A DNA stretch of 64,000 nucleotides from Obrimoposthia wandeli (GCA_977020255.1 CDROCS010005599.1:1-64000), one strand, 5' to 3'. Counted from the stretch's first letter, positions 9,522 through 54,176 are shown. Program-made: numbers and translations. Notes: generated by a model from the sequence alone, not told the origin.

Positions 9522-10598
9522 TCAAATTGTCTTAGGCAACGATTCAATTTTCCCACCGGCGCTACTGCTCAAAAGTACCATTGCATCACCTATTTTCATG
9601 TTGGCTGCAGAGCCGTGAATGGCCTTTTCAGCGTCCTCTAGCGCTTGATCGAACTGGTTGGCAATACGTTGAAAGCTATCAACCTCCGCCGTTGTTTTAT
9701 CACTTATTTCAGACATTGAACTCAGTAAAGCCTCAATGCGTTGGTAGGCCTCGTTAGTGGTGCTCGCCATACCGCTTTCGCTCTGCGAACCGATAGAGGC
9801 CATTGATGATTCAATCGCTTTAGCCATCGTCGATATTTTTTCCCTCAGTGTCACTTCATTGCTCTGTAATTGTTGCAGGTTATGATTGATGCTTTTGGCA
9901 TCTTTGGTTGAATTCTGTGCCAATGTTTTTATTTCGTCGGCAACCACCGCAAAACCTCTACCCGCTTCACCCGCTCTCGCCGCTTCAATCGCCGCATTTA
10001 GCGCCAGTAAATTAGTTTGGTCTGAGGTGAAAGTGATGGCAGTGGCGAGTTGAGAAATACCGCTTAGATCACTGAGAAAATGATTGAGTTCGCGGTTTAA
10101 ATCTTCAGAAGTGCTAGAGAACTGATGGATTTCTCCACTGAGTGATTGCGTTTTATCACAGATCGTTGAAAACCCCAGTCGTAACTCATTGAGAGCGTGT
10201 TGATCTTTATTGAGTGCTTGCGCAATTATTTTTAGTTCATTAATTGATTGAGTTACCGCACAAGCGAGCTCAGTAAAGAAGAGTAAACGCTCTTTAGACG
10301 CCGCGTTTACTTTTGTGGCGTTTGTCAGTACCTGTTGTGCAAATTGTTGCAATTCACTGATGTCAGCTGATACTGGAGATGTGTCTAACACTGTGGGCTC
10401 GGTGGGCAAAGGCTCTGTTTTAAATATGATAAAAGGAATCAATAAACACAAGAAATACGTCAGTGCGATCAGAGACCAATTAAATGAAGCCCCCTGTGAA
10501 AAAGAGCCCTGCTGATAGCAGGCATTAATGACACTGGCCGCTATTATGCAAGATAAAAGGCTGCTGGCGGTGTAGGCATTACGTAAGCGTAAAAACAT
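9522..10598 (-). CDS. Methyl-accepting chemotaxis protein with minimal sensory region
   Basis: Signalling hairpin [31 protein letters not shown]; two N-terminal hydrophobic segments with a short loop; RBS AAGGA upstream of the ATG. Confidence 0.92.
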
Positions 10599-10994
10599 TT
10601 CAAATCCTTCTCAGAAGTGAATAAAGCGTAGCAGTGAGCGGTAACGCTGATAATCAATGCAACGATGATATGGAAAAGCGAAAATACTAAAGCGTTATCG
10701 TAAGTAAATATTAGTCCAAATAAGACAAAATTCATCAATTTATGATCAGTTATCTATTATCAATGATTTAAATGTGCTGATTAAAAAATAAGCTATATTT
10801 AATGTGAGCTTGATAATACATAAGCAGATACTTTTCTTACGTTGAGTTATTGCTTCAAACGCCATCGGAAATGGACCTAGGGGTCAAAAAAATTAAGTTG
10901 ATATTCATGACTGTTGGCATTATGTTGGTATCTTATAATCTAGGAATAATACCTAGACATTGAGAAGTCGAACGTTCTATATTGAGGTTACATT

Positions 10995-12059
10995 ATGAGC
11001 ATTAGGACTTTTACAGCGTATTATAAGTGGCTGTTTGTAGTAGCTATTGTTTTATTGCAAGGTTGCATCCAGAGCGAGCCAGAAAAATTTAGTTGGCAGC
11101 TACAGTCTCAGGCAAATGAAAATAGCTTGGACTATAAAGAATTACTAGAGTTCTCAGCGCAAGTGAAGCTGATGAGTGCGAATCGTTTTAATATACAGAT
11201 TCACCCCAGCGGTGGTGTGACCGCAGGTGCCGACATTTACACGGCAGTAAAAGATGGTCGGGTTGAAATGGGTAACGGCTGGCCCAATTGGTGGTCGGGT
11301 AATAATCCGGCTTGGGCGCTACTCAACGCTGGCCCTTTCGACTTTATGAATATAGATGCCTCGATGATGTTCTTTATGGCGGGCGAGGGTAGCGCACTGG
11401 CTAATTCACTGTCGCGTCCGCACGGTATTCTATGGCGCCCAGCGTGGTGGCCGGGAATGGAATTTGGCTTGCTAGCGAAAGAACCTATTACTAGCTTGCA
11501 AGATCTAGCGATGAAGAGAGTGCGCATCGGACCTGGATTACCTAGCGAGGTTTTAGCAGCGGCATCAGGTGCTTATACTATCCCCTTGCTACCTGAAGAG
11601 ATTCGCGGTGCTCTAGAGAGTGGTGATCTTGATGCGGTTGAATGGACTACGACTACAGGGGCTTGGGATTTAGGGTTAAGCGATATCAGTAAACACGCGA
11701 TAGTCCCTGCCGTTTGGCAACCATCTGTACTGGCGGACTTTTTAATCAATGAGAAAGCCTACGCGGCGCTGCCGGTAGATCTACAGGCTATCCTTGAGTC
11801 GGCGATTAAAGCTTACACCTTGCAAACAACTTTAAAAGCAAAAGTAGCTGATTTCGCATCACTTAAAAAATTCACTGAAGCTGGCGTTAGCATCACCAAG
11901 TGGAGCGACAGTGATTTGAAAAAATGGCGCGAGGTGACGGAGCGGGTGATGCACAAGTACGCGGAAGAAAGCGCGATTAACAAAGAAATCATTGAGAAAA
12001 AGAAATTGTTTAAACAACAGTACAACGCTTATTACGAGTGGTTTGGCAGTTATGAGTAA
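10995..12059 (+). CDS. TRAP-type (DctP/TakP-like) solute-binding lipoprotein, with no DctQM nearby
   Basis: Lipobox LQGC; AVKDGRVEMG, MKRVRIGPG, ALESGDLDAVEW motifs. Confidence 0.85.
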   Translation: MSIRTFTAYYKWLFVVAIVLLQGCIQSEPEKFSWQLQSQANENSLDYKELLEFSAQVKLMSANRFNIQIHPSGGVTAGADIYTAVKDGRVEMGNGWPNWWSGNNPAWALLNAGPFDFMNIDASMMFFMAGEGSALANSLSRPHGILWRPAWWPGMEFGLLAKEPITSLQDLAMKRVRIGPGLPSEVLAAASGAYTIPLLPEEIRGALESGDLDAVEWTTTTGAWDLGLSDISKHAIVPAVWQPSVLADFLINEKAYAALPVDLQAILESAIKAYTLQTTLKAKVADFASLKKFTEAGVSITKWSDSDLKKWREVTERVMHKYAEESAINKEIIEKKKLFKQQYNAYYEWFGSYE

Positions 12060-12065
12060 CACGCT

Positions 12066-14315
12066 TTGAATGCACTAACTTCTCGGTTATTTGTTATTCT
12101 CAGTGTTATTACCATTGTTGTAATGTCTAGCTTTGTGGCGCTGCGTTATCAATCTAACGCGCAACTAATGGGCACGGCACTGGAAGAGCGCAGCGAGGCT
12201 GTTGCCAAACGCGTCGCCAGTTCGATTCAACTGACGATCTGGAATATCTATCGTAAAACTTACGATAGACGATTCTCTGTTGAGTTTGCCTCGGGCATTC
12301 TCAATGCTGAAATGCAATCTTCTTTTGTTAAAGGGATCAAAGTATTCGGTAATTTTGGTCACCTTTACACCGGTAAAATAAAGGTAGATAACCAGGTCGT
12401 TACTTATGTGCCATCGCTGCACGACACGATGTGGAGCCGTGATGAAAATGTGCACCGTTATCCTATCCGCGAAGGGGTCATGACGATAGGTAATGTCGAA
12501 GTGACTTACAGTGATGATGAATTCTCCGCAAACTTACGCCAAAGTTTAATTTTAGATATCACTCAAATAGCGGTTATCAGCTTGCTGTTTGTGCTCTCTC
12601 TCTATTTAGTTTTACATCGTGCTTTAGTATCGCCACTGAAGTCTTTACAAGTGGCGGAGCGCGCGTTGCGCTCACTTGATGAGGCCGTTTTTGTATTGGA
12701 TTACCAAGGTTTTTTAATTGATATAAACCCCAGCTTTAGCAAGATGACCAAGTACTCATTGGAAAGTATTAAAGGTGAAATTGCCCCTGTTTTTGCCAAA
12801 GAGCATCCACACAAGAGCATTATAGAATTACTTGAACTCAATGACGGTAAAAGTTGGGCGGGAGAAGTGATTGGGAAAAGGCGCTGCGGTAAAAAATTTC
12901 CAGGCTGGTTGAATGTACATAAGGTGACAGGGCGAGATCAATCGGTCACTTACGTAGCGGTCTTGAATGATATTGCCGAAAAGCAAAAGGCTGAGGAAAA
13001 ATTACATCAATTAGCCTACTTTGATACGTTAACTAACGTGGCGAATCGCTATTCGTTTTTGCAAAATTTAGAACATGATACTCATCAGGCTCGTCGTACT
13101 GAGAGGCAAGTAGCCCTACTTTACATCGATTTGGATAACTTTAAATGGGTCAACGATAGCTTTGGCCATGAAGTAGGTGACAAATTACTGATCGAACTCA
13201 GTCAGCGTTTTAATAACCGACTGCGAGCCAGTGATGTACTTTACCGAATAGGCGGTGATGAATTCACAGTGATCGTTAAAGATTATGACGATGACGTTAG
13301 TTTGGCCGGATTTGCCGCTAATCTGGCCAGTTTGGCGGCCATGCCAATGAGTATTGAAAACCATGTGATTCACCCAGGGGTTAGCATTGGTATAGCAACT
13401 TATCCTCAGGATGCTGAAGACGCACAGCTGTTGATAAAACGTGCCGATGCCGCAATGTTTCAGGCAAAGCAGGAAGGGCGAGGCCAAGTGTGCTTTTTCT
13501 CCTCTGAGCTAGAAAAATTACGTGTGCAAGATCAGTTGATTGTCGAGGGATTACAGCAGGCGTTGGCGCAAGATGAGTTTAGCTTGTACTTGCAGCCCAA
13601 AGTCAGTTTAGGGGGCAGTAACTTTGTCACCCACAGTGTTGAGGCATTGTTACGCTGGCACCGTGAAGGTGAAATTGTCTACCCGCCGGATGTCTTTATA
13701 CCGGTAGCCGAACGGCATAATTTAATCTGTGATATAGGTTATTGGGTCATAGAACAAGCTTGTTCTCAGCTGGCTAAGTGGCGTGAGCAAGATGTTACAG
13801 ATATTAGTATTGCGATTAATTTATCCCCTAAGCAGCTCAAAGATGACAAACTGTTTTTCTTTCTCAGCCAGCAGATAAGCGACTACCATATTCGCCCCGG
13901 TGAACTGGAAGTTGAAATTACTGAAAGTGCAGTGATCGAGGATATCAAAAGCTCCATTTATACTTTGAACCGATTGCGCTCGTTGGGTGTCAGTGTCTCC
14001 ATGGATGATTTTGGCACCGGCTATTCATCTTTGAGTTATTTGAAGCAGCTGCCTATCGATGTGCTAAAAATAGATCGCTCTTTTATCGATACCATCCCTC
14101 ACGACCCCGATGATGTGGCTATCGTCAAAGCGATATTTTCGATGGCCCAAGCACTCGGTATTGAAGTCGTTGCCGAGGGCATTGAAACGCGTGAGCAATT
14201 GCAGTTCCTGATCGATAATAACTGTCAGATGGGGCAGGGATATTTCTTCTCAAAACCTCTGTCCAGTGATGCATTTCTGCAGTGGCATCGCGCAGAACAC
14301 TTATACGCTCACTAA
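12066..14315 (+). CDS. Membrane-anchored PAS-GGDEF-EAL c-di-GMP enzyme
   Basis: Two TM segments flanking a periplasmic region; PAS; RASD I-site five residues before GGDEF; VEALLRW and DDFGTGYSS; TTG start 6 nt after the SBP stop. Confidence 0.93.
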   Translation: MNALTSRLFVILSVITIVVMSSFVALRYQSNAQLMGTALEERSEAVAKRVASSIQLTIWNIYRKTYDRRFSVEFASGILNAEMQSSFVKGIKVFGNFGHLYTGKIKVDNQVVTYVPSLHDTMWSRDENVHRYPIREGVMTIGNVEVTYSDDEFSANLRQSLILDITQIAVISLLFVLSLYLVLHRALVSPLKSLQVAERALRSLDEAVFVLDYQGFLIDINPSFSKMTKYSLESIKGEIAPVFAKEHPHKSIIELLELNDGKSWAGEVIGKRRCGKKFPGWLNVHKVTGRDQSVTYVAVLNDIAEKQKAEEKLHQLAYFDTLTNVANRYSFLQNLEHDTHQARRTERQVALLYIDLDNFKWVNDSFGHEVGDKLLIELSQRFNNRLRASDVLYRIGGDEFTVIVKDYDDDVSLAGFAANLASLAAMPMSIENHVIHPGVSIGIATYPQDAEDAQLLIKRADAAMFQAKQEGRGQVCFFSSELEKLRVQDQLIVEGLQQALAQDEFSLYLQPKVSLGGSNFVTHSVEALLRWHREGEIVYPPDVFIPVAERHNLICDIGYWVIEQACSQLAKWREQDVTDISIAINLSPKQLKDDKLFFFLSQQISDYHIRPGELEVEITESAVIEDIKSSIYTLNRLRSLGVSVSMDDFGTGYSSLSYLKQLPIDVLKIDRSFIDTIPHDPDDVAIVKAIFSMAQALGIEVVAEGIETREQLQFLIDNNCQMGQGYFFSKPLSSDAFLQWHRAEHLYAH

Positions 14316-14335
14316 AGTCTAGCGTCCTGTTTACC

Positions 14336-14362
14336 AAGCGCTCATTTACCCGTTGAGCGCTT
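14336..14362. terminator. Probable terminator hairpin between convergent genes
   Basis: aagcgctca-N9-tgagcgctt followed by a T-rich run. Confidence 0.5.
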
Positions 14363-15239
14363 TTGTCTTCTCACAATACTGATGCATATAATCGCGCAAG
14401 CACTTTGCCCTAGCGCTTAATAACTTACCACTTGGCCACACTGTATAAAGATCGCGGTTGGGCCCCTGCCAAGCTTGTAACACTTGCACTAGATCTCCTT
14501 GTTCGATGAAGTGCTGAACTTCACTGGTGGGTAATAGTGAAATGCCAAGATCATCGCAAACTAGTTGTGTCACAAGGTTTACGTCGTTGGCTAAAGAGGT
14601 GAATCGCGGATGCAGTTGCTGCGACTTAGTGCCATCTACTTTAGACATTGACCAGGTCGATAATGTATTGGTGCCTATTAAACGATGGCCGCTGAGTAAT
14701 TCTAAGTTCTGTGGAACGCCGTGCTGCGCTAAGTAGTGAGGAGTGGCGACCAAAATGGTCTTTAATGATCCCAAGCGTTTTTGATAGAGTAGAGAGGACT
14801 CTTGCGGGCCTATGCGCAACGCAATATCGGCCCCTGTCGACAATAGGTTCTCCACACTGTTACTTAAACTCAATTCAAGTTTGATAGCGGGATAGGTTTT
14901 AATAAAATCGGACCACATAGGCTGTAATAGGCCAGTAGATATATTGGTAGGTGCCAATACTTTCAATGGGCCGGCTAATGCATTGAGTTCAGTATTGAGT
15001 TTAAGTTGAGTTTGTTCCAGCTGCTCGACTAACCCCGCATAAGCTTGATAAAAACTCTCTCCGGCAGGTGTCAGGATAAATTGCCGAGCAGATCTATGAA
15101 TGAGTTTACGCGCAACCTGCTCTTCTAGCCGCTTTAGGCGTCGGGTCACAGTGGCCGCTGGAAGGTTGAGCTTGTGTGCCGCCGCCGCCAGCCCTTGTTG
15201 CTGCACAATGTGAATAAATAAAACGATATTATCGTACAT
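14346..15239 (-). CDS. LysR family regulator (CrgA/DmlR-like)
   Basis: HTH AAAAHKLNLPAATVTRRLKRLEE; ADIALRIG; likely start at the ATG at 15239. Confidence 0.92.
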   Translation of the reverse strand: MYDNIVLFIHIVQQQGLAAAAHKLNLPAATVTRRLKRLEEQVARKLIHRSARQFILTPAGESFYQAYAGLVEQLEQTQLKLNTELNALAGPLKVLAPTNISTGLLQPMWSDFIKTYPAIKLELSLSNSVENLLSTGADIALRIGPQESSLLYQKRLGSLKTILVATPHYLAQHGVPQNLELLSGHRLIGTNTLSTWSMSKVDGTKSQQLHPRFTSLANDVNLVTQLVCDDLGISLLPTSEVQHFIEQGDLVQVLQAWQGPNRDLYTVWPSGKLLSARAKCLRDYMHQYCEKTKALNG

Positions 15240-15337
15240 GATTTCGTATCTGGAATTTATGATTGAATTAATCAATATATATTTCATTTATGCAAGTGTC
15301 TATGCTGTTTTTTCCAAAACATACAGCAGAGAAGCAA

Positions 15338-15625
15338 ATGACGAAATTATGGATTAGTGCCGGTCTTAAGGTTAACCCCGGTAAATCAGCGAGCTATGTA
15401 AAAGACGCCCTTATCATATTACAGCAGCAAACGTGCCTAGAAGAGGGATGCATATATTTTGATGTGTTACACAACATAGAAGATCCCAGTAAATTCACGC
15501 TCTGGGAAGAGTGGATAAACGAAGCCGCACTGGCGGAACACTTTGCTAAAGATCACACTAAAGCGTATATCAAGCAGGGATTAACCGAGGTTTTATACGT
15601 TGAAAAGCTGGAGAAACTATCATGA
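15338..15625 (+). CDS. Antibiotic biosynthesis monooxygenase (ABM)/putative quinol monooxygenase
   Basis: EEGCIYFDV...FTLWEEW...AL.EHF...HT pattern; likely start at 15338. Confidence 0.85.
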   Translation: MTKLWISAGLKVNPGKSASYVKDALIILQQQTCLEEGCIYFDVLHNIEDPSKFTLWEEWINEAALAEHFAKDHTKAYIKQGLTEVLYVEKLEKLS

Positions 15626-15864
15626 TTCATCGCCTTATTTTTGCGTTTATAATGTCCTTACTCTTATCTTCTCTGATGACAGCGTGGGTCACTTGGCTGA
15701 ATCTCGGTTGGTCGGGGCAATACTTACAACAGTGGCTACATGCCTTTGTTTTAGCTTGGCCTGTCGCTGCGCTGATTTCATTATTCAGCGCACCTGAAAT
15801 TCATAAGCTGGCCACCTCGCTCAGCCTTAGAGTCAGTGCCGGTTTGCGGACAAATAATATATGA
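15622..15864 (+). CDS. DUF2798-like small membrane protein
   Basis: FAFIMSLLLSSLMT...WLHAFVLAWPVA pattern; overlaps both neighbours by 4 nt. Confidence 0.8.
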   Translation: MIHRLIFAFIMSLLLSSLMTAWVTWLNLGWSGQYLQQWLHAFVLAWPVAALISLFSAPEIHKLATSLSLRVSAGLRTNNI

Positions 15865-16238
15865 GTACTCTACAGCGCTTGAATTATAGCCAGCTGGGCG
15901 AAGCGGTGGGTCCGTATTCTCATGCAGTGATTCATCAAAAGGTGTTATATACCTCTGGGCTTACAGCGTATGGAAGTGACGCGCAGCATAAAGAGATAGT
16001 TGCACAAACTAAGGAGATATTTACGCAACTTTCTCATATTTGCCAGAGTCATCAAGTGACGTTGGATCATCTTATAAAAGTTACAATCTTTATCACTGAT
16101 ATGAGGGATGTCGCGCAGTTAAGGTCAGCATTATTTGAACTTTACGGGGAGAACTTTCCAGCGAGTACACTTATTAAGGTGGACTCATTATTTAGTCAGG
16201 AATTACTGATAGAAGTCGAAGCGACCATTGGTTTGTAA
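15861..16238 (+). CDS. Rid family protein
   Basis: GPYSHAV..LYTSG, LIKVTIFITD, FPASTLIKV...IEVEA; lacks the RidA Arg. Confidence 0.88.
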   Translation: MSTLQRLNYSQLGEAVGPYSHAVIHQKVLYTSGLTAYGSDAQHKEIVAQTKEIFTQLSHICQSHQVTLDHLIKVTIFITDMRDVAQLRSALFELYGENFPASTLIKVDSLFSQELLIEVEATIGL

Positions 16239-43988: not shown

Positions 43989-44064
43989 TGCGCATTAATT
44001 TGACAAGTGATAACCAACAACTGTCAGTATAAATATGGTTTTCGGGTAATTGAAGTGTAGGGAC

Positions 44065-44679
44065 ATGTATATGCTAGCAGCATTTTTGCAGTTAGGTTTA
44101 ATGGCAGTTTTATTGATAGGTGCGCCTGGACCCGCAGCGATGGCGCTTATTGCGACAGGCTCCTCTAGCCGTTTTCGCCAAGGGCTGCCCTTAATTATCG
44201 GTTTAGTTGTAGGCGTTCTCTTAACTGGCCTATTAACTAATATTGGAATGTCAGCTCTATTAAGTCGTTGGCCAGATGCACGATTAATCATGCAGATTAT
44301 CGGCGCTGTGTTTATTCTCATTATGGCGATAAAACTAATTCGTCCGCCTCCCATAGGAGCTCTTGATACAACTCAGATTGTATTTGGGTTTAAATCTGGG
44401 GTTTTGATGAATATTCTCAATCCTAAAGCTTACGCCGTGTTTATGTTACTTATCTCCAAATTCATGCCAGCGTTAAGCACAAAGCTTTTATCAATCATCA
44501 TGCTTGAAATGGTAACGTCGCTCGCAACGATTACTGTCGGTTTTGGATGGTTGCTCGTTGGTCGGTTTTTAGGACGTATCGCCAATAGCTCTAATGGGGA
44601 GAAATACATTCGATTTATCTCGGCTGGATTAATGATAGTTTTTGTTATGCCAATCATTATCTCTATGCCTAGTCATTAA
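44065..44679 (+). CDS. LysE/RhtB family translocator
   Basis: APGPA motif and G..MNILNPKAY; six hydrophobic segments. Confidence 0.88.
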   Translation: MYMLAAFLQLGLMAVLLIGAPGPAAMALIATGSSSRFRQGLPLIIGLVVGVLLTGLLTNIGMSALLSRWPDARLIMQIIGAVFILIMAIKLIRPPPIGALDTTQIVFGFKSGVLMNILNPKAYAVFMLLISKFMPALSTKLLSIIMLEMVTSLATITVGFGWLLVGRFLGRIANSSNGEKYIRFISAGLMIVFVMPIIISMPSH

Positions 44680-45095
44680 TTTAAGGCGTTATAAATAGAT
44701 AATGCTTATGGTTAATAGTGGATTAGCTTTTATATGTATTTCAGTGGCGAGTTAATCAAGATTAAATAACGATATCACAGTAATCGGCATTAAGTGTTGT
44801 TACCGGAATAAAAGAACTGGCATTATTGGCGTAAAATTGTGCAGGGCCTTTTCGCCTTCCATAAAAGGTAACAATGCTGATATATTTTTAAAAATATTAC
44901 CATTGTTAGCTGTGGCGACGGAGTGAAAATGGCAATAAGTTACGTCAGAATTTCTCAAAAATTATGCAGGTAAAAAGCTATCGAGTAAGAATCATAAAAG
45001 TAATCATGTATTATATATACGGCAGCTAGATGAGACCAAACTAGCCACCACGTCATAATTACTTAGCGGCAGGTGTGTATCGCAGGTACGGATGT

Positions 45096-46040
45096 TTAAG
45101 ATATCTTCTCATATTTAGATGAATTTCTTCCTTGTTGCTTTACCGCGTACAATAAACGATCAGCTTCATTCAAAATGGTTGACAAATCAAGTCTCAAATT
45201 TGGCGTTACATTAACGGCGCCAACACTGATAGATAAGTTCTCAGATACATCACTACTCTTGTTTTCTAAGTTTAAGCTCAGTACTCGCTCTGTCATTTCA
45301 TTTAAAACAGACTGTATGTCAATTTTCCCAGCATTAGGAAAATAAAAATAAAACTCCTCACCGCCACAACGATAGACTTCGCCATTATACTCATATAGAC
45401 ACCGTTTTAAGACGCTAGAAATCAGTCTTAAAGCAGTGTCGCCCTTCTGGTGACCATAAGTATCATTATATCCTTTAAAGTAGTCGATATCACAAATACC
45501 AAATACTAGTGAGGTTTTCGTTATTTTAGCTTCTTGCCATATCAAAGCAGAATCTAGATCCCATTTTCTTCTATTTGCTAACTCAGTCAGGCTATCAATA
45601 TTCGCAATGCGCTCTAATAGCTTTCTTTGACGCACCAGTTCTATGTGTGTATTGACACGAGCTTTGACAATACTGTGATGAAAAGGTTTTTGTATATAAT
45701 CGCAACCACCAAGTAAAAGTCCTTTCTCTTCATCTTCTACACTCTGTAGCCCTGATATAAAAATAACAGGAATATGATTAATAGTGGGATTGTTTTTCAA
45801 TTCTACAATCATTTCAAATCCAGTCATGCTCGGCATTATTACATCTAGTATAATAAGGTCAGGTTGTAATTCGACTGCTTTTGATAAGCCTGCATAAGCA
45901 GATTTAGCTAAAAAAATAGTATAGTCTTGGCTAAGTATAGAGCTTAATACTTTTAAATTATAACTTTCATCGTCAATACAGAGAATACTGAACTCTAATT
46001 CACTGCCTCTGCGTTTTTTAATTATATCGCCGCTATTCAT
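45096..46040 (-). CDS. Response regulator diguanylate cyclase (REC-GGEEF)
   Basis: REC with LDVIMP; DIDYFKGYNDTYGH and RCGGEEF; no RxxD I-site; starts 1 nt after the hybrid kinase stop. Confidence 0.93.
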   Translation of the reverse strand: MNSGDIIKKRRGSELEFSILCIDDESYNLKVLSSILSQDYTIFLAKSAYAGLSKAVELQPDLIILDVIMPSMTGFEMIVELKNNPTINHIPVIFISGLQSVEDEEKGLLLGGCDYIQKPFHHSIVKARVNTHIELVRQRKLLERIANIDSLTELANRRKWDLDSALIWQEAKITKTSLVFGICDIDYFKGYNDTYGHQKGDTALRLISSVLKRCLYEYNGEVYRCGGEEFYFYFPNAGKIDIQSVLNEMTERVLSLNLENKSSDVSENLSISVGAVNVTPNLRLDLSTILNEADRLLYAVKQQGRNSSKYEKIS

Positions 46041-46041
46041 T

Positions 46042-49000
46042 CTATCTTCCGATTATTGATTTTTCTAAGTTATCTAGTTCTACAGTAGCTGATTCAAATT
46101 CAAAATCACAAATCAAATAATGCACATTACTAATTTGCTTTTCATACACAGTGCCTCTAGATAAATCATGTAATGACCATGAAACGCTTTCAGAAGCCGC
46201 TTCAGCTCTCGCTAATAATAGTCTAAGTTGATTGATTAATAGTATAGCAGCTGGGTAATTTAATATTTTATCAATTTCACTTTTTTCTGTTTTTGCGAAC
46301 AAAGGTGATAATTGAGAAATTATTGAATATAGCTCTGATAATAAATCAGATACTTGGATGGGGGTTATTTTCTGATGTTTAGTAGACTCTTGCAAAACTG
46401 ACGCATATTGCGCTAATTTGTTTGCTCCAATATATTGCGCTGTAGATTTCAGAGAATGAGTGATTAAAAATAATTCATCATATTCATTCGCATCTAAATA
46501 TTTTTCTATTTTTTCATATAAACACTTATTCTTAGTCCAAAAATCTTTAACTAGTGACAAATAAAGACTCGCTTTATTCTGTAATCTATAGATTGATTTG
46601 TCTACTTCTAATTGCTCTATATTATAAAGATATTCAAGAGTTTTTTTCTCTATCTCTAATGTTTCAAAGTCGACTAAAACAGGAGGTCTCTCTAATTTTT
46701 TTTCTATGTTTAATAATTTAGCCAATGTGTGATATAAAATATCTGGATCAATCGGTTTTGTTATATGGGCATTCATACCGGAATCAAAACTTAATTCTAC
46801 ATCACTTCGTAAAGCATGTGCTGTCATTGCTATAATAGGTAATTGTTCTTTATTAAAGTTTTTTCTTATTTCTTGCGTAGCAGTGATACCATCCATAACA
46901 GGCATTTGAATATCCATGAGGATACAGTCAAAACTACTTTGTTCTACTTTATGTATAGCCTCTCTACCATTTTCTGCGATAGTGACATTAATCATGGTGT
47001 CCATTAAAAAGCCTTGAGCAACTTGTTGATTAATTTCATTATCTTCTACCAATAATAGGTGGTAATCACTTAAATCAGGAGGAGTAACCTCTTCCTTTAA
47101 TGTAGTCGTAGCTAAACGGGTATCTTTTTTACCAAACATTAGTACATTGATATTATCTATTAATGAAGAGGCATTTAATGGCTTTTCTATAAAACTTTTA
47201 ATCTCAGTGTTACTTGCCAAGGCCATTGCTTCATTTTTATCATATGCCGATATCATAAGCATGAAAGGTGTTGCTCGATTAGACTTCGCTGTTATTTTTT
47301 TACATGTCTCTATACCGTCTAACTGTGGCATTTTCCAATCCATGATAACCAAATCAAAAGGCTCATCAATTTCATCGGCTATTTCAAATCGTCTAATTGC
47401 TGCAAGACCGCTGGTTTCACTTTTAGCTGAAATTCCGAATGATGAGAGTACATCCAATATGACTTGTATTGCTGTTTCATTGTCATCTACGACTAATACA
47501 TTCAAGTTACTTAACAGTGCTAGATCAATATATTCGGTACTATCAGCGACTATATTTGCTGGTCTAAATATAGCATTAAACGTAAAACAAGAACCTTTAT
47601 CTTTAATACTAGTTGCCCGTAATTCGCCGCCCATTAATTGAGCTAGCTCTTTACTAATAGCAAGGCCTAAACCCGTACCACCGTATTTTCTTGTGGTGGA
47701 AGCATCCACCTGATAAAAAGAAGAGAATAGCCTTTTTTGTTCTTCTTCTCCTATACCGATACCTGTATCCATTATCTCGAACACAAGATCATGACCTTGA
47801 TCTACAGAGGGCCCAGAATGTATTGAAATTTTGATAAAGCCTTCATCGGTAAATTTAACTGCATTATTTATTAAATTAACCAATATTTGTTGAAGTCTTA
47901 AAGGGTCACCAATAAGTAGCATAGGGATGCTACGATCAACCTCTATAATGAATTCTAGGTCTTTCTCATATATAATTTGTCCGCAAATAGCGGTTACTTT
48001 CTGTAAAACATCATCTAAATTAAATTTTATTCTTTCGAGAGATAATTTATGCGCTTCTATTTTTGAAAAGTCCAGAATATTATTAATCAAACTTAATAGG
48101 GAATCAGATGAATCAGATACTTTACTAACAAGGCTTTGCTGCTCTATAGACAAAGGTGTTCTTTTAAGAAGTCTATTTAGGCCTATAACTGCATTCATCG
48201 GTGTACGTATTTCATGACTCATATTCGCTAAGAAGTTTGACTTAGCGATCGTTGATTCTTCAGCCTTTAACTTAGCAGAGGCTAACGCTTCTGTTCTTGC
48301 TATTACTCTCTTTTCTAAACTTTGATATAAAAAGGCATGTGAAAGCGATATAGCTGCCTGAGATGCTATAACATTCAATAATGAAATATGCTCTTGACTG
48401 AATGCATTTTCAATTAAGTCATTTTCTAAGTAGACAACGGCTATCATGTTACCCTGATGAATAACCGGTAATCCAGCGACTGTTAAAGGTGACTTACGCT
48501 GAAAATAAACATCATGATAAAATTCAGTGTGTTCAAAAGGTCTGTTAATAATACATAGTTCTTGTGAATCAATGACGCGTTTAACGATACTTTCGGGGAT
48601 TTTTTGTTTTGTAGCTGCATCGATCAACGGTTGATGTAATAACACGCCAATATGATCTTTGTCACCAGCAGCTTCAAGCCATAATTCTTTATTAATATCG
48701 TTTGTTTGTATCAATGCACCCCAGCCAGCGCCCGCATTTTTCAACAAAATAAACATCAGTTTCTCTAATAAGCTATCTAAGTGTATTTCACTAGAAATCA
48801 AAAGATTGATGTCTTGAACCGTTTGTAAGTTTATCGAGTCTTGTGGCTTATAAATTTTATTAAAAGAGTGATCGTCAATAAAATTAATATTTGACCAATA
48901 TTCTCTTAGTTGCTGTAGTTTAGTAATAGCACCCCACTGTCGGTATTCTTGATATGAAACAGTGATGAAGGTTTTAGCTAATACATATTTATTTTTAGCA

Positions 49001-52000
49001 TGCCAATAGTTAGCAAAACATTCATTGCAGATGGCCAATATATTATTAAAACCGCTATTGGACGCTTCTTCTATGGCTCTGCTATATAAATCAATTATTT
49101 GAGTGTCATTACCACACACTCTGTCCGACTCTGCTTTTAAAAGTAAGTATTTATGCAGATAATTGTGTGGGCAAGCTTCAGACCACTCTTCGAACATTGC
49201 CAGCTTAGCCTGTGATAGTAGAAATAATGGATCATTTTCGTTATCAGCAAACCTTAAAGCAATGAGTGCTGCGAAAAAAGTAGACTCTGGTATTTTATTT
49301 TGACCTGGTACTGATGCCGAGATTAGTTCTGCCTTTTCCAATAAAGATAATTGTATATTTTTCGACGAGTTGGTTAAATATGCATGTCGTAATTTAGCAT
49401 TATAAAAATAGCCTAAATGTAATGGAGCATGTTCATAGTTTTTAAGAAAAATATTTTCGTTGAAGTCATCATCATCAAAACTATCTAAAGAATGGGTCAA
49501 ACCCAATAAGGCCTTAACTGATTGTAGTGCGCCAACTGTAACGCAGTCTTTCATATCTAACTGCTTATGTTTACTTAATAATTGAATATCATCTGTCAAT
49601 GTTTCATGTACGGATTGTAGTTTTTCGCCTAATGCTAATGTATCACTACCTCTCACAGCACATATATAACCAAGTGTGGCTAAGTCACCAGACTGTAATG
49701 CAAGGTCATAGCTCATATTATAGTAAGGAACTGTTTTTTGTAGCGGATGATTCCAATGCTGAGTAAATGTCGCGTATAAAAAGTATGTGCTTGCTTTAAT
49801 CAGTTTGTTTTTTCTATTCTCAGCCAGTTTAACCGCAAGTAATCCAAATTTGTCCGCTTGTTTATAACGATTATATACGCTGATAATTGCTAATGAATAA
49901 TTAACATAGGCGAAAGGAGATATATCATCATGGCCATGCTCTAAAGAAAGCTGTGTCATTATAATAGTGGATAGTAAGTTCAGAGGAGTTTTACCGCTAA
50001 GATAGCTAGCGTACCACATTCCCATTAAGAGTTTCATTGCCGCTTTTTGGTTATCATTTTCCATTGAACTATGATCTATCAAATCATCAATATTATGGGT
50101 TGATATGAAACTATCTATTGATTTAAACCCTTCCATGAACTGTGCTTCAATCTCTGTTGTATCATCTGGTATTCGTATGCTCAAAACGCCAAGGCCTTTC
50201 TTTTGTAAGGCTATAGCCTCAGCGAATCGCCCTTGAATTTGATACTGAGCAGTTTGAATAGCAATCACTGATACGATTTCTAACGCAGTATTGGCCACTT
50301 TCATTGCTTGTATATACAGTTTCTCAGCTAGCTCAAAATCACCGATTAAATAACTTACCTCCGCCAGTGTATTAAACACATCCAAGCGACGATAGTCTAA
50401 ATCCTCACACGAAAACTGATAAACATTAAGCATAGTTTTTTGTGCATACGTAAAGGCGGTTGATCTTTTCGCTTTACGGGCAGCCAGCAGATTAAGATCA
50501 ACAAGTACCTTCTTTTCATTGATGCTGGCATAATATTTACCTGCATTCAGTTGATCTGTAATTTCGAATATATTACTTTCTAGATTTTCTTTGAGAGTAC
50601 CTTTTAATAATCTCATACCAAACTGCCATTTGAATTCCGCCAAATGCTCTTGTGGAATTAATTGGAAGGCAGCTTGTTGTACTCTATCGTGAAGGAACAT
50701 AAAACTTGCCTGTGATAGCAAGTCTTCACTGCTCGAAAATCTGTAGTTTTCATTCACTGGAAGAATATAACCGTTTGATATCATCGGCCATAATCGTTTA
50801 TAAACGTCTTGTAAACCAAGGTGGGCAACTTTTTGTAACTTTTCCAATGAAAATTGGTTACCTAAATTAGCCGCAAGCTTTAAAATTTCCAAGCTTTCAT
50901 TCGAAAATTTCTTCAACTTATCAATCATAAGATCCACAATGTTCGAAGTAACATTTACCACGTCTATTGCTTGTTGATCCCAGTGCCAAGCACCTTTTTC
51001 ATAGGAATAAAAAATATATCCCTCTTCATTTAGCATTGTAATGAACTGATTAACGTAAAATGGATTTCCCTGTGTCTTTTTAATACAAGTAGCGGCAAGC
51101 GGCTCGGCTTGATCTAATGTTAACCATAAACTATCAGCTAGTAATCTTTTAATGTCTTGTAAGTTAAGTGGATGTAAATGAATTTCACCGAACTTTATTT
51201 TTTTTGATTTTAAATCTCGAATGATTTTTGATAATAAATGTGTTTCATCTATTTCATTATCTCGATAGGTGCCAATTATCATTAAATAAGAATTTTGATC
51301 AAGCAGTTCGTTTATCAATCTAAGGGAGGCGGTATCTGCCCATTGCAAATCATCTAAGAAAATGACTAAAGGATTATTTTGCGAGGTGAATGCGTTGACA
51401 AATTTAACAAATGTCATCATGAACTGGCGGTCACTTACTAGGGTATTCTGCTCTGGGGATGTTGTAATTTTTGTATCAAAAAAAGGTGCTAACTCGGGGA
51501 CTAATTCTGTTAATAGAGTAAAGTTTTCACCTATTTTGGTTTGAAAAATATCTCTCCACTTGTTTTGTTGATCATTTTGTAAATTTGAAATTTGCCGCAG
51601 TAGTAAGCGTAAGGCTTGTGAAAAAACATAAAATGGTTGATCCGTACTAAATTGTTCGCATTTGCCGGAGGTGAATAGCCCTTTGTTTTCACTGATTTTC
51701 TTTTGTGCTTCTTTTATAAGTGCCGATTTTCCTACGCCAGAATAACCACTGACGAGAACAATTTTATTTTGTCCAGAGGCTACTATTTGAAATCCGTCCA
51801 TTAACTGCGATATTTGTTTTTCTCTACCGTATAGTTTTCTTGATAACTGTAATTTTTCAGGTGAATCTTCTTGCCCTATATCGAAATGCGATATTTCGCT
51901 CGTTTCCAGCCATTCTTTTTCTATTCGTTTGAGATCCTGTAGTAGACCAAAACTACTTTGATAGCGATTATTTGGAGATTTTTCTAGCAAACGAGCAACT

Positions 52001-52719
52001 ATTTCAGACGCTTTTTGCGCAATGCTGCTATCTAGTTCATAGAGTGGTTTAACTTTTTGTGTGAGTTGTTTATAAACAATCGATAGTTGATCTTGTTCAC
52101 CATCAGCATAAATTTGTTGTCCACTAAATACTTCATATAAAGTGGCACCTAAAGAGTATAAATCACTGCGGTTATCTGTCGGTAAATTTGAGCGGCCAGT
52201 TTGCTCAGGCGAAGTATAAGCGGCTTGGCCTATTAGTATATTATTTAAAGATGATACTTCATCTTGCTGTAATTTGGTGGCAAGCGAAAGATCTACTATT
52301 GAAATATTACTGTCATTTTTCGATATAAAAAATGCATGTGGGTTAATATTTCTATGTAATAAACCATTAGTGTGTAGATAATGAACAGCTTCGGTCATTA
52401 AAGTTGCAATACGTAGTTTTTCACTAAATGTCGTTGGATTCTGTAATCTGTCCGACAAAAGATCACCGCCATTATCCTCATATATTATGGCACTATGGTA
52501 GTCTTCAGTATTAAAAGATAGCGCCGATAGTACTTTTGCTGGGTCCAGCGACCTAGTCAGCTCATATTCCGATTTTAGCTCCGCATTCATGTAGCGGTTA
52601 GATGACATTTTTTTATTATATTTTACTAGAACTTTTTTACCACGGTTATCACAAGCTCTGGCTAAGCTTGCTTTGTTACATGATTTAAGAACCTCTAGTA
52701 TCTTAAAATTGGCAATCAT
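46042..52719 (-). CDS. Giant hybrid sensor: Ser/Thr-kinase-like domain, AAA/STAND ATPase, helical repeats, GAF, HisKA, HATPase, REC, REC, Hpt
   Basis: HRNINP/DLS/SPEQ kinase-like motifs; Walker A SGYSGVGKS and FLDDLQWAD; GAF (YLENDL); H-box FLANMSHEIRTPMN; GGTGLGLAI; two REC domains (MDWKMP, MDIQMP); Hpt HSLKS. Confidence 0.93.
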   Translation of the reverse strand: MIANFKILEVLKSCNKASLARACDNRGKKVLVKYNKKMSSNRYMNAELKSEYELTRSLDPAKVLSALSFNTEDYHSAIIYEDNGGDLLSDRLQNPTTFSEKLRIATLMTEAVHYLHTNGLLHRNINPHAFFISKNDSNISIVDLSLATKLQQDEVSSLNNILIGQAAYTSPEQTGRSNLPTDNRSDLYSLGATLYEVFSGQQIYADGEQDQLSIVYKQLTQKVKPLYELDSSIAQKASEIVARLLEKSPNNRYQSSFGLLQDLKRIEKEWLETSEISHFDIGQEDSPEKLQLSRKLYGREKQISQLMDGFQIVASGQNKIVLVSGYSGVGKSALIKEAQKKISENKGLFTSGKCEQFSTDQPFYVFSQALRLLLRQISNLQNDQQNKWRDIFQTKIGENFTLLTELVPELAPFFDTKITTSPEQNTLVSDRQFMMTFVKFVNAFTSQNNPLVIFLDDLQWADTASLRLINELLDQNSYLMIIGTYRDNEIDETHLLSKIIRDLKSKKIKFGEIHLHPLNLQDIKRLLADSLWLTLDQAEPLAATCIKKTQGNPFYVNQFITMLNEEGYIFYSYEKGAWHWDQQAIDVVNVTSNIVDLMIDKLKKFSNESLEILKLAANLGNQFSLEKLQKVAHLGLQDVYKRLWPMISNGYILPVNENYRFSSSEDLLSQASFMFLHDRVQQAAFQLIPQEHLAEFKWQFGMRLLKGTLKENLESNIFEITDQLNAGKYYASINEKKVLVDLNLLAARKAKRSTAFTYAQKTMLNVYQFSCEDLDYRRLDVFNTLAEVSYLIGDFELAEKLYIQAMKVANTALEIVSVIAIQTAQYQIQGRFAEAIALQKKGLGVLSIRIPDDTTEIEAQFMEGFKSIDSFISTHNIDDLIDHSSMENDNQKAAMKLLMGMWYASYLSGKTPLNLLSTIIMTQLSLEHGHDDISPFAYVNYSLAIISVYNRYKQADKFGLLAVKLAENRKNKLIKASTYFLYATFTQHWNHPLQKTVPYYNMSYDLALQSGDLATLGYICAVRGSDTLALGEKLQSVHETLTDDIQLLSKHKQLDMKDCVTVGALQSVKALLGLTHSLDSFDDDDFNENIFLKNYEHAPLHLGYFYNAKLRHAYLTNSSKNIQLSLLEKAELISASVPGQNKIPESTFFAALIALRFADNENDPLFLLSQAKLAMFEEWSEACPHNYLHKYLLLKAESDRVCGNDTQIIDLYSRAIEEASNSGFNNILAICNECFANYWHAKNKYVLAKTFITVSYQEYRQWGAITKLQQLREYWSNINFIDDHSFNKIYKPQDSINLQTVQDINLLISSEIHLDSLLEKLMFILLKNAGAGWGALIQTNDINKELWLEAAGDKDHIGVLLHQPLIDAATKQKIPESIVKRVIDSQELCIINRPFEHTEFYHDVYFQRKSPLTVAGLPVIHQGNMIAVVYLENDLIENAFSQEHISLLNVIASQAAISLSHAFLYQSLEKRVIARTEALASAKLKAEESTIAKSNFLANMSHEIRTPMNAVIGLNRLLKRTPLSIEQQSLVSKVSDSSDSLLSLINNILDFSKIEAHKLSLERIKFNLDDVLQKVTAICGQIIYEKDLEFIIEVDRSIPMLLIGDPLRLQQILVNLINNAVKFTDEGFIKISIHSGPSVDQGHDLVFEIMDTGIGIGEEEQKRLFSSFYQVDASTTRKYGGTGLGLAISKELAQLMGGELRATSIKDKGSCFTFNAIFRPANIVADSTEYIDLALLSNLNVLVVDDNETAIQVILDVLSSFGISAKSETSGLAAIRRFEIADEIDEPFDLVIMDWKMPQLDGIETCKKITAKSNRATPFMLMISAYDKNEAMALASNTEIKSFIEKPLNASSLIDNINVLMFGKKDTRLATTTLKEEVTPPDLSDYHLLLVEDNEINQQVAQGFLMDTMINVTIAENGREAIHKVEQSSFDCILMDIQMPVMDGITATQEIRKNFNKEQLPIIAMTAHALRSDVELSFDSGMNAHITKPIDPDILYHTLAKLLNIEKKLERPPVLVDFETLEIEKKTLEYLYNIEQLEVDKSIYRLQNKASLYLSLVKDFWTKNKCLYEKIEKYLDANEYDELFLITHSLKSTAQYIGANKLAQYASVLQESTKHQKITPIQVSDLLSELYSIISQLSPLFAKTEKSEIDKILNYPAAILLINQLRLLLARAEAASESVSWSLHDLSRGTVYEKQISNVHYLICDFEFESATVELDNLEKSIIGR

Positions 52720-53631
52720 CGTAATATTTCCAAATTATCCCAAGAGAGTATGCTTTTTATTATAGTTTCAGGGCATAAATCAATATTTTTCCCTCATCGC
52801 TTTTTGCGTATTTAAGAATAATCGCAGCATAACGGGAGATCATTAATAATACGGCGCTGAAGTTATGATTTTTATGGGAATCTCGAGTGTATTAGATTCG
52901 AGAGACCTTGGTGCTTTGTAGCGTTAATGGTGAAAGCCTCTCTAAACTTAGATGAGCCCTAGTTCCATAATAATATTTCTTAAAAGCCTATATGAACGTA
53001 TAATTAATTTCGATGTTTTCAAACGCTTTGATAATAATATAACTCTGACTAAGAAAAATAAATTCTTACAAATATATGTTTTTATTGTTTATTTACAAGT
53101 AGTTGAGATTTTTCATGGATATTTACATCTATCGTAAAATAGCAGTTACTAAACAGTATATCCAGCTTCTCTAGGATATTTTTCTTCTCTTAGCGTCGAA
53201 AACAGTTTCGTTCTTATTAATATGTAACTCCATATCAATTTAGCTGCTTGGTTTAGTCGTTATAAAAGGCTAGACCCTGGAAGAAGAGTTTTCTGGTTTT
53301 GATAGGGTACTATTGTTGGAGTGGCTAATAAGGTTTGTTCTCTCAATGTTTATAAGCACAACGGCTACTCGTCAAAATACGTATTTAGCAAAAAATGATG
53401 GAATCTAACCTTGGAAAATTCATAATTTTAATTGTTGTCCAACACAGATAGTGGTTATAGCTATTATTCATTAGCAGCTTTGGGCAAGGTAGATAGTATG
53501 AGCGCTCAAGGACCTCGTTTGCTTACACGACCGGGCAGTTCCTGCGCTTATCTTGAACCTTTCATTGAGGGGATACTTCATGGTACTTGAGTTACGCGCT
53601 GGATCTTCACGCAGTCCTTTGGACAATGGTG

Positions 53632-53667
53632 TATCTATCTATCTATCTATCTGCCTGCCTATCCATC
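53632..53667 (+). repeat. Tetranucleotide microsatellite (TATC)5 plus degenerate units
   Basis: tatctatctatctatctatc-tgcc-tgcc-tatc-catc. Confidence 0.8.
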
Positions 53668-53669
53668 TA

Positions 53670-54176
53670 GGCGTTAGTGCATTACTCTGTTCCCTGGCAG
53701 GATAAGCGTTAGCCAATGATTGTGTGAACTCAATCACTGCCTTTTTAGAGGCGGAATAAGTCGATACTATACTGGCATCAAAATTACTTAACATGAGGGG
53801 GGCTGTTGATGCCGCTTTTGTTTAAAGTAAACTTGGTGCGTGCACTGCTACAAGAGCTGATTGCCCCATTAAAATTAATATATCAAAAATATAACAGGCT
53901 TTGATCCTTCTCTGTATTTCAGCACACCTGGGGGATTTATAAACAGCTAAATGGAAGACGATCGTCTATTCGCTATCTCAATTTACTGCATATCAAATAC
54001 GTTAACTTGTTTGAAAGTGATGTTGTCGGTTTTATTAGATGGCTCAACTAGACCTATTGCCATGGCTTTATAATTTGCAGCGGAGAATCCTCTGGTTAAG
54101 AGAGATCTTTACCAATAGCTCCTCCACCGCTAAACGCTATTTTAGTTGCGTGCTAGGTAAGTTGATCAATGATCAT
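53670..54176 (-). pseudogene. Degraded short-chain dehydrogenase (SDR) remnant at the end of the cupin operon
   Basis: Hand translation finds ordered fragments with stops and frameshifts: MIIDQLT*HATKIAFSGGGAIGKDLS, KQVNVFDMQ*IEIA, I*LFINPPGV, YSASKKAVIEFTQSLA...SNALTP. An RBS precedes the ATG at 54176. Confidence 0.6.

Follow-up and report, generated by a model that had tools for sequence, protein, structure and literature searches.

An orphan TRAP-type solute-binding lipoprotein encoded beside a membrane PAS-GGDEF-EAL enzyme: a possible binding-protein-gated c-di-GMP sensor

Within the window, that is, the whole stretch of 64,000 nucleotides that was analysed, a gene for a solute-binding protein (SBP) is directly followed by a gene for a membrane-bound sensor enzyme, and ORF list and translations place both genes exactly as they were first described (Table 1). 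Six nucleotides separate the stop codon TAA of the SBP gene (12057-12059) from the TTG start codon of the sensor gene, a start position that is common to the homologues of the sensor. The flanking genes, encoding an MCP (9522-10598) and a LysR regulator (14346-15287), are both located on the minus strand, and the SBP and sensor genes therefore constitute a self-contained two-gene unit. A riboswitch or leader RNA was rejected after positions 10400-14500 yielded no Rfam match at E≤1. Promoter-like hexamers at 10898-10926 and 10954-10983 are consensus matches only (3 found vs. 7.4 expected); the scan for promoters and terminators returned fewer matches than shuffled sequence and was not taken as evidence.

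Table 1. Features of the SBP-sensor locus (positions counted from the first nucleotide of the window)
Feature	Position	Strand	Basis
Shine-Dalgarno-like GAGG, 7 nt 5' of the ATG of the SBP gene	10984..10987	+	read from sequence
DctP/TakP-type solute-binding lipoprotein gene, 354 aa; proposed ligand-binding co-receptor	10995..12059	+	Pfam, AF2, Foldseek
Signal peptide with lipobox LLQGC; Cys24 codon 11064-11066	10995..11066	+	translation
Ligand-site region: GWPNWW 95-100, GMEFG 154-158 (E156), VRIG (R177), VEWT (E216, W217), WQPS (Q242)	11277..11726	+	alignment
Membrane PAS-GGDEF-EAL enzyme gene, 749 aa, TTG start; proposed signal transducer	12066..14315	+	ORF list, translation, Pfam
Transmembrane helix 1, residues 8-27	12087..12146	+	hydropathy; within long AF2 helix 3-62
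Single PAS/Cache-like periplasmic domain, residues 29-164; proposed SBP docking site	12150..12557	+	AF2, fold match
Transmembrane helix 2, residues 165-187	12558..12626	+	hydropathy; AF2 helix 151-194
Cytoplasmic PAS, residues 198-305	12657..12980	+	Pfam PAS_9, PAS, PAS_8
GGDEF domain, residues 317-473; I-site RASD 13224-13235, GGDEF 13251-13265	13014..13484	+	Pfam, E 1e-44
EAL phosphodiesterase domain, residues 496-731, with EALLR, DDFGTGYS, EGIE	13551..14258	+	Pfam, E 1.6e-74

The initial annotation read the first gene product as a DctP/TakP-like SBP with an LQGC lipobox, and both parts of this description hold. The SBP matches the Pfam family DctP (PF03480) over residues 39-324 with an E value of 4.5e-29 (102 bits at a cut-off of 23.4) and also scores above the cut-off of NCBIfam TRAP_S1. 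Its AF2 model (pLDDT 88) includes the long C-terminal helices and was aligned by Foldseek with TM values of 0.82-0.90 to 7UG8, 2ZZV, 4PET, 5CM6 and TakP (2HZK), at a sequence identity of only 21-27%. The PF03480 match and the fold place the SBP in the DctP family and its TakP-like subfamily. The N-terminus consists of a basic n-region, a hydrophobic core and the sequence LLQGC, whose Cys24 is invariant and preceded by L-x-[GAS] in 41 aligned members of the SBP family, and we predict the SBP to be a bacterial lipoprotein. With a mean column identity of 63% across Pseudomonadota, Verrucomicrobiota and Bdellovibrionota, the constraint on the SBP is unusually strong.

Residues W100, E156, R177, E216/W217 and Q242 as well as the ligand-site motifs around them are all invariant in the alignment of the SBP family. 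Their equivalents in TakP, namely Y100, Q156, R177, E214/W215 and E240, are ligands of pyruvate and its cation; this mapping is based on near-matching numbering and on printed alignments to 7UG8, 4PET, 5CM6 and 2ZZV, with TakP itself not residue-aligned. Judged by its sequence, the SBP appears to possess the carboxylate-pairing arginine and the cation-ligand positions of TakP, and the closest structures carry 2-oxovalerate with Ca, lactate with Ca or pyruvate with Na. Fold and site residues are common to the SBP, TakP of Rhodobacter sphaeroides, the ketoacid receptor of Synechococcus CC9311 (7UG8) and TTHA0766 (2ZZV). Unlike these three proteins, the SBP is a predicted lipoprotein with a Trp-rich signature (GWPNWW, AWWPGMEFG) and its gene sits with a sensor instead of dctQM; compared to TakP, Glu and Gln are exchanged at two of the cation ligands (E156, Q242). 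Since the carboxylate-plus-cation site of TakP is retained, the ligand of the SBP is probably a carboxylate.

Sequence, hydropathy and motifs bear out what had been stated about the second gene, namely that it encodes, 6 nt after the SBP gene, a protein with two transmembrane helices and intact GGDEF, I-site and EAL motifs. The cyclase side contains DLDNFK (355-360), RASD (387-390, with five residues between it and GGDEF) and GGDEF (396-400), and the phosphodiesterase side EALLR (526-530), INLS, EVEITE, DDFGTGYS (647-654), VLKID, EGIE (704-707) and QGYFF. The GGDEF motif is kept in 28/28 cyclase-type family members and the upstream RxxD I-site in 26 of them, while the main EAL motifs are kept across the GGDEF-EAL members. 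By these motifs, the sensor is a predicted bifunctional diguanylate cyclase/phosphodiesterase whose catalytic motifs are intact. Pfam gave no HAMP match before the cytoplasmic PAS.

The periplasmic domain of the sensor comprises ~135 residues and was modelled by AF2 (pLDDT 83) with two helices and five strands. Scans of 39 members detected no Pfam family in this domain and no PDB sequence matched it at E≤10; therefore, it was placed by fold alone. By fold, it comes closest to the LapD-type periplasmic domain 4u64 of the LapG-binding LapD orthologue CdgS9 (Z 11.3, rmsd 3.0 Å, 117/131 residues), and the extracellular domain of WalK also ranks high among the matches. Residues R49, W59, E82, F97 and G142 are invariant in the family. 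The periplasmic domain of LapD works by binding a periplasmic protein, and the model of the window's domain likewise looks like a protein-docking module.

For comparison we used 54 loci with a relative of the SBP from one-genome-per-species contigs, which were picked via SBP peptide patterns and many of which are MAG contigs. They represent marine bacteria from the three phyla named above, with an SBP identity of about 49-75% in 53 of the 54 loci. Checked across these loci as the initial annotation had suggested, the pair recurs: a sensor gene is located immediately downstream of the SBP gene in 49 of 51 assessable loci, mostly at a distance of -1 to +43 nt, and the N-terminal domain encoded by each of the 49 ORFs is homologous to residues 1-195 of the window's sensor (26-69% identity). 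Of the remaining five loci, two are truncated at a contig end and one carries the 28%-identical outlier; L015 and L040 have no adjacent sensor, and in neither did tblastn reveal a concealed or decayed sensor downstream of the SBP. The 47 complete pairs end in 26 PAS-GGDEF-EAL proteins, one PAS-GGDEF protein, 11 histidine kinases and nine hybrid kinases. The proposed tie of the module to c-di-GMP enzymes is hence borne out for the 27 cyclase-type pairs but not for the 20 that end in histidine kinases. In the SBP tree, the starred branches require at least two changes of the GGDEF-EAL label. As the output domain is swapped among pairs, only the periplasmic domain accompanies the SBP throughout.

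The same association emerged from the sensor side. A profile of the periplasmic domain retrieved 45 clusters at E≤1e-30 among 1.84 billion representatives; a PF03480 gene is situated directly upstream in 3/3 sensors with informative contigs, and for a fourth sensor on a short contig the upstream ORF ends in the C-terminal motif of the SBP family. The adjacency of the SBP family and the sensor-domain family is near-obligate across three phyla, whatever the output. Distant relatives of the periplasmic domain (E 1e-19 to 1e-11) have an SBP_bac_3-like gene upstream in 4/5 informative contexts.

The SBP gene had also been described as lacking dctQM, and tblastn with Pfam-verified probes detected no DctQ or DctM homologue anywhere in the window, which accordingly does not encode an SBP together with DctQ and DctM as in a functional TRAP transporter. 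The initial annotation had named orthologous SBPs that normally sit with dctQM as the observation that would speak against its reading, but these genes occur within 7 kb of only one of the 54 loci (L016), and at the other 53 the same probes match nothing by BLAST. Within 7 kb, the 54 loci contain 40 multi-TM ORFs, all of which were examined, 37 of them by Pfam; the rest are the sensor of L053 and two large unscanned ORFs. At L016, DctQ and DctM adjoin the pair, which is inserted between a TakP-like dctP and dctQM. The transporter at this locus has its own canonical dctP that is just 21% identical to the sensor-type SBP. A carboxylate or 2-oxoacid as ligand would fit both the retained TakP site and the embedding of the L016 pair in a TakP-like TRAP operon.

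Our main reading, to which we assign a probability of roughly 0.7, is that the gene pair is an operon encoding an extracytoplasmic sensor of two components, in which the SBP acts on the c-di-GMP enzyme. A lipid-anchored DctP/TakP-type protein, no longer part of a TRAP transporter, would bind a small periplasmic carboxylate, probably along with a cation as in TakP-like proteins, and in one of its conformations would dock on the PAS/Cache-like periplasmic domain of the sensor. This contact could be relayed to GGDEF and EAL by way of transmembrane helix 2 and the cytoplasmic PAS, shifting the balance between c-di-GMP synthesis and degradation and thereby surface-versus-swimming behaviour. The direction of the switch would depend on which state activates the cyclase or the phosphodiesterase. 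What suggests physical contact between SBP and sensor is gene order. The distances of the SBP and the sensor domain correlate with r 0.87 (Mantel), which is also expected from the co-inheritance of neighbours, and this correlation is not taken to prove contact, as linked genes have a common history. Counting against the main reading are the SBP genes without a neighbouring sensor gene at L015 and L040, the dctQM genes beside the pair at L016, and a feature of the lipoprotein. In E. coli, lipoproteins with a residue other than Asp after the lipid-modified Cys are sorted to the outer membrane. This residue is almost never Asp in the 41 aligned SBP family members, and by the E. coli rule the SBP would reside in the outer membrane; host taxa may, however, sort by other rules. 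With a tether of only ~8-10 residues, an SBP in the outer membrane could hardly reach a small domain at the inner membrane. In the main reading, the lipoprotein would instead reside in the inner membrane.

Alternatively, the SBP could still be the transport component for a DctQM that is encoded elsewhere, and its adjacency to the sensor would reflect co-regulation or a dual role. The maltose-binding protein, which signals through Tar in addition to its role in transport, is a precedent for the latter. Although the SBP keeps the full TakP-like fold and ligand site and the L016 pair lies amid transporter genes, we consider this explanation unlikely given that dctQM is missing from the whole window and from 53/54 loci and that the L016 transporter is provided with a dctP of its own. 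The invariant lipid anchor and the high mean column identity also suggest a constraint beyond ligand binding. Moreover, a review places kinase-stimulating SBPs in clusters of signalling genes and dual-use SBPs in clusters of transporter genes (PMC8050422).

It is also conceivable that the PAS/Cache-like domain binds the signal itself and that the lipoprotein has an accessory role instead of being the ligand-dependent switch, either in buffering, enriching or clearing the ligand or in stabilising the sensor. Ligand-binding single Cache/PDC domains such as those of CitA and DctB are among the fold matches (Z 8.4-9.4), and the invariant polar residues R49, E82 and D80 could line a pocket. However, the best match is a protein-binding domain, and SBPs, here of another family, also accompany its distant relatives. 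The periplasmic domain also diverges much faster than the SBP (mean p-distance 0.61 vs. 0.37), which is the reverse of what would be expected if the conserved ligand site lay in it. We consider this reading quite improbable. Finally, information could flow in the opposite direction. LapD, a HAMP-domain protein whose GGDEF and EAL domains are degenerate, signals inside-out and has the protease LapG as its binding partner. By analogy, the c-di-GMP status might cause the periplasmic domain to capture or release the lipoprotein, which in turn would control another envelope function. The sensor resembles LapD/CdgS9 in having a small periplasmic domain between the two transmembrane helices of a GGDEF-EAL protein, and its nearest fold is that of a LapD-type periplasmic output domain. 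Yet this fold alone is shared with LapD-type receptors: the window's sensor lacks a HAMP domain, shows no degeneration in its GGDEF, I-site or EAL motifs, and has as its partner a ligand-binding protein and not a protease. In 20/47 family sensors this domain stands at the head of a histidine kinase, an enzyme driven by its input. We therefore regard inside-out signalling as very improbable.

A binding protein that acts on a c-di-GMP enzyme has precedents in NspS-MbaA and ScrB-ScrC, where SBPs of other families control GGDEF-EAL membrane proteins (PMC8050422). NspS of Vibrio cholerae is a PotD-like SBP_bac_8 protein, and the periplasmic domain of MbaA has been described as dCache-like (PMC8050422). 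As in NspS-MbaA, the window's SBP gene lies directly 5' of a gene for a two-TM GGDEF-EAL protein and is not linked to a transporter. In contrast to that system, the SBP is a DctP/TakP-type lipoprotein, its predicted ligand is a carboxylate instead of a polyamine, and its partner, a small domain of the single PAS/Cache-like type, comes from an unannotated family. The analogy to NspS-MbaA drawn by the initial annotation is thus supported by the pairing, but does not extend to a double-Cache-like partner. ScrB of Vibrio parahaemolyticus switches the membrane GGDEF-EAL enzyme ScrC between cyclase and phosphodiesterase modes (PMC8050422), and we propose that the window's SBP may govern its GGDEF-EAL enzyme similarly. 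The two systems differ in that ScrB belongs to SBP_bac_3 and its operon is headed by the signal-synthesis gene scrA, whereas the window pair has no scrA-type gene and its upstream neighbour is the divergent MCP gene. SBP_bac_3 is, on the other hand, the family that also accompanies the distant relatives of the window's periplasmic domain. Overall, the window pair shares with the known SBP-dependent c-di-GMP enzymes a transporter-independent SBP next to a membrane GGDEF-EAL protein, but not an SBP of the SBP_bac_8 or SBP_bac_3 family with a dCache-like partner.

Activation of membrane receptors by SBPs is thought to be widespread, but few such systems have been characterised and only two of them involve c-di-GMP enzymes. 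No DctP-family SBP is described in reviews up to 2023 as acting on a signalling receptor. We tentatively propose, at somewhat less than even odds, that the periplasmic domain defines an unrecognised superfamily that reads out a separately encoded SBP. Its DctP branch would employ transport-free lipoproteins and report one specific carboxylate of importance to marine bacteria in all three phyla, other branches would employ SBP_bac_3 proteins, and the outputs would include cyclase/phosphodiesterase, kinase, chemoreceptor and phosphatase. If the main reading holds, the pair would bring another SBP family into signalling, account for a class of 'orphan' TRAP binding proteins and provide a new partner sensor domain for annotation. 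Since the SBP family is sharply delimited and highly conserved, the ligand of one member would probably be the signal for all, in cyclase-type and kinase-type systems alike, and this signal would presumably govern biofilm-versus-motility decisions in marine Oceanospirillaceae and their relatives. A conformationally switching, high-affinity SBP could also become a biosensor scaffold, like its lactate-binding relative (9ebw/7e9y). As a side observation, BCCT transporters are encoded near 4/54 loci, which gives a weak lead only toward a betaine-like ligand.

The initial annotation had described a solute-binding protein (SBP) of the DctP/TakP type with an LQGC lipobox, encoded 6 nt upstream of a two-TM sensor with intact GGDEF and EAL motifs and without dctQM, and this description is right on every point. 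The SBP matches Pfam DctP (PF03480, E 4.5e-29) and NCBIfam TRAP_S1, and its translated N-terminal signal peptide closes with LLQGC. The sensor's TTG start lies six bases past the TAA stop of the SBP gene. The periplasmic domain of the sensor (residues 29-164) lies between hydrophobic helices at residues 8-27 and 165-187, and Pfam detects PAS, GGDEF and EAL domains; the RASD I-site, GGDEF, EAL, DDFGTGYS, EGIE and the remaining catalytic motifs are all present. BLAST with DctQ and DctM, the TRAP membrane subunits of locus L016, found no homologues across the whole 64-kb window.

Features of the window and of the compared loci (L0xx)
Feature	Location	Strand	Remarks
DctP-type SBP gene	window 10995-12059	+	ORF, 354 aa; Pfam and NCBIfam matches
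PAS-GGDEF-EAL sensor gene	window 12066-14315	+	ORF, 749 aa, TTG start
MCP gene	window 9522-10598	-	flanking, opposite strand to pair
LysR regulator gene	window 14346-15287	-	flanking, opposite strand to pair
Three small genes	window 15290-16238	+	tightly overlapping
Low-G+C block	window 44000-54000		G+C 0.33-0.37
SBP_bac_3-like gene	L061:3141-3905	as sensor	before second-tier sensor
SBP_bac_3-like gene	L062:2971-3729	as sensor	before second-tier sensor
SBP_bac_3-like gene	L065:918-1700	as sensor	before second-tier sensor
SBP_bac_3-like gene	L067:2108-2968	as sensor	before second-tier sensor
BCCT transporter gene	L004:10414-12036		near pair
BCCT transporter gene	L043:4291-5874		near pair
BCCT transporter gene	L044:799-2367		near pair
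TRAP gene region	L016:6-5957		
Split SBP and sensor	L050:6929-8870		two ORFs each
Split SBP	L048:7399-8001		

As a check, the initial annotation had suggested looking for recurrence of the pair without dctQM across genomes. In a scan with one genome per species, 54 loci were compared from Gamma- and Alphaproteobacteria, Verrucomicrobiota (Opitutaceae, Pelagicoccus) and Bdellovibrionota, and in 53 of them the SBP is 49-74% identical to that of the window. At 49 loci the N-terminal domain of the next downstream ORF is a homologue of the window sensor's residues 1-195 (26-69% identity), and the intergenic distances are mostly -1 to +43 nt. The other five comprise two loci truncated at a contig end, an outlier with 28% identity, and L015 and L040, where no sensor lies nearby, by tblastn either. 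The opposite pattern, in which orthologous SBPs would normally sit beside dctQM, is not observed, as DctQ and DctM occur within 7 kb at one of the 54 loci, L016 from a Rhodospirillales MAG. This check covered 40 ORFs with at least four hydrophobic segments, 37 of them scanned with Pfam and the other three being the L053 sensor itself and two large ORFs (L002, L014); the L016 probes gave no BLAST match at the remaining loci. Genes of the pair are split at L050, which is the chromosome record of Aliamphritea spongicola JCM 16668, and at L048. Since the protein database contains intact A. spongicola versions (P0010, P0126), these splits reflect frameshifts or assembly errors and not decay throughout the family.

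The outputs of the sensors vary. Counting the window, 47 pairs are complete, and their sensors are 26 PAS-GGDEF-EAL proteins, one PAS-GGDEF protein, 11 histidine kinases and nine hybrid kinases; the other genes around the pair are unrelated between loci. What is conserved is therefore the SBP with the periplasmic domain and not the SBP with a c-di-GMP enzyme per se. Output types cluster in the SBP tree, where the window SBP falls within a GGDEF-EAL clade of Oceanospirillaceae, yet the starred branches require at least two changes of the GGDEF-EAL label. Distances of SBPs and sensor domains correlate strongly (r 0.87), as expected for linked genes in any case. A search in the reverse direction, starting from the sensors, compared a profile built on 39 periplasmic domains (alignment A1) with 1.84 billion representatives; it retrieved 45 clusters at E<=1e-30 and, beyond a gap, a second tier with E values of about 1e-19 to 1e-11. 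All three core-family sensors with informative contigs (P0196, P0198, P0183), each a hybrid kinase, have a PF03480 gene directly upstream, and on the 1.7-kb contig of a fourth the upstream ORF ends in the SBP family's C-terminal motif YYxxFGPYD.

For the periplasmic domain of the window sensor and 38 relatives Pfam holds no family, and a PDB sequence search found no match. According to the AF2 model (pLDDT 83), the domain is a single PAS/Cache (PDC) fold, in which TM1 extends into a long helix followed by a second helix, a five-stranded sheet with one inserted helix, and TM2. In a search independent of Foldseek, the fold of this model comes closest to that of CdgS9, a LapD orthologue, in its periplasmic output domain (Z 11.3, rmsd 3.0 Å, 117 residues); Cache sensor domains, both single and double, WalK and CitA rank next. 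The LapD periplasmic domain acts through binding of a periplasmic protein. R49, W59, E82, F97 and G142 are invariant within the conserved motifs PTIWNIY, ILDSEL, YGNFGH and MTIGNVEV. Second-tier relatives include HAMP-containing kinases, chemoreceptors and SpoIIE phosphatases, one with a weak sCache_4 match. An SBP_bac_3-like gene, in two cases scoring under the Pfam cut-off, precedes the sensor in four of five informative contexts, the sensors being HAMP-containing kinases, a chemoreceptor and PAS proteins; the fifth (L055) has no such gene. Recurrence of the pairing with SBPs from an unrelated family is an independent argument that this type of domain reads out binding proteins, and suggests a wider superfamily of SBP-docking domains that would include the second tier.

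By analogy to NspS-MbaA and ScrB-ScrC, the lipid-tethered SBP would dock in a ligand-dependent manner onto the periplasmic domain, and docking would act through TM2 and the PAS domain to shift the balance of GGDEF and EAL activities; we consider this sequence of events likely. Cyclase-type members all keep their GGDEF and EAL-domain motifs, and 26 of 28 the I-site, so both activities are under selection. A difficulty lies in the lipoprotein sorting rule of E. coli, where a residue other than Asp after the lipidated Cys means an outer-membrane destination. This residue is almost never Asp in 41 aligned SBPs, and outer-membrane sorting is hard to reconcile with the short tether and small inner-membrane partner.

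These 41 SBPs share 63% mean column identity, with the lipobox Cys and the Trp-rich blocks MGNGWPNWW, RPAWWPGMEFGL, DAVEWTT and VPAxWQP invariant. The AF2 model (pLDDT 88) superposes at TM 0.82-0.90 on 7UG8 (Synechococcus 2-oxovalerate/Ca receptor), 2ZZV (lactate/Ca protein), 4PET, 5CM6 and TakP. In TakP, R177 and Y100 hold pyruvate, which is also bound via a cation coordinated by Q156, E214, the W215 carbonyl and E240 (PMC1839085). Mapped by numbering and alignments of other TakP-like structures, the family invariably carries R177, W100, E156, E216, W217 and Q242, Glu and Gln thus being swapped at two sites relative to TakP. Given these residues, a carboxylate bound together with a cation is the most economical prediction. 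L016 also points to a carboxylate: a canonical TakP/7UG8-like dctP, the sensor-type SBP, a histidine kinase, dctQ and dctM follow each other there. With only 21% identity between the two SBPs, this transporter has a binding protein of its own, and the SBP of the sensor type comes in addition; the arrangement hints that kinase versions regulate TRAP uptake of the 2-oxoacid type. A weaker alternative to the carboxylate-cation ligand is a zwitterionic carboxylate, e.g. a betaine, because of the many invariant tryptophans and of BCCT (betaine/carnitine/choline) transporter genes within 7 kb of the pair at four loci (three tabulated, one more in alignment A3), somewhat above chance by a rough estimate.

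A 2021 review names 13 families of SBPs that act on receptors, with only NspS (SBP_bac_8) and ScrB (SBP_bac_3) acting on c-di-GMP enzymes and DctP/PF03480 solely as transporter component (PMC8050422). Later surveys, a c-di-GMP sensory review and further full-text searches yielded no TRAP-type SBP acting on a receptor. The pair, whose SBP is of the DctP family unlike those of NspS-MbaA and ScrB-ScrC, would thus bring a further SBP family into a known sort of system.

In the window, an AT-rich spacer of 396 nt separates the pair from the divergent MCP gene. The product of this gene has an MCP signalling domain and, at 358 aa, is too small to hold an extracytoplasmic ligand-binding domain as well. 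The three small genes (ABM monooxygenase-like, DUF2798 and RidA/L-PSP-like), which diverge from the LysR gene, are probably the target operon of this adjoining regulator. The low-G+C block stands out from about 0.45-0.49 in the rest of the window.
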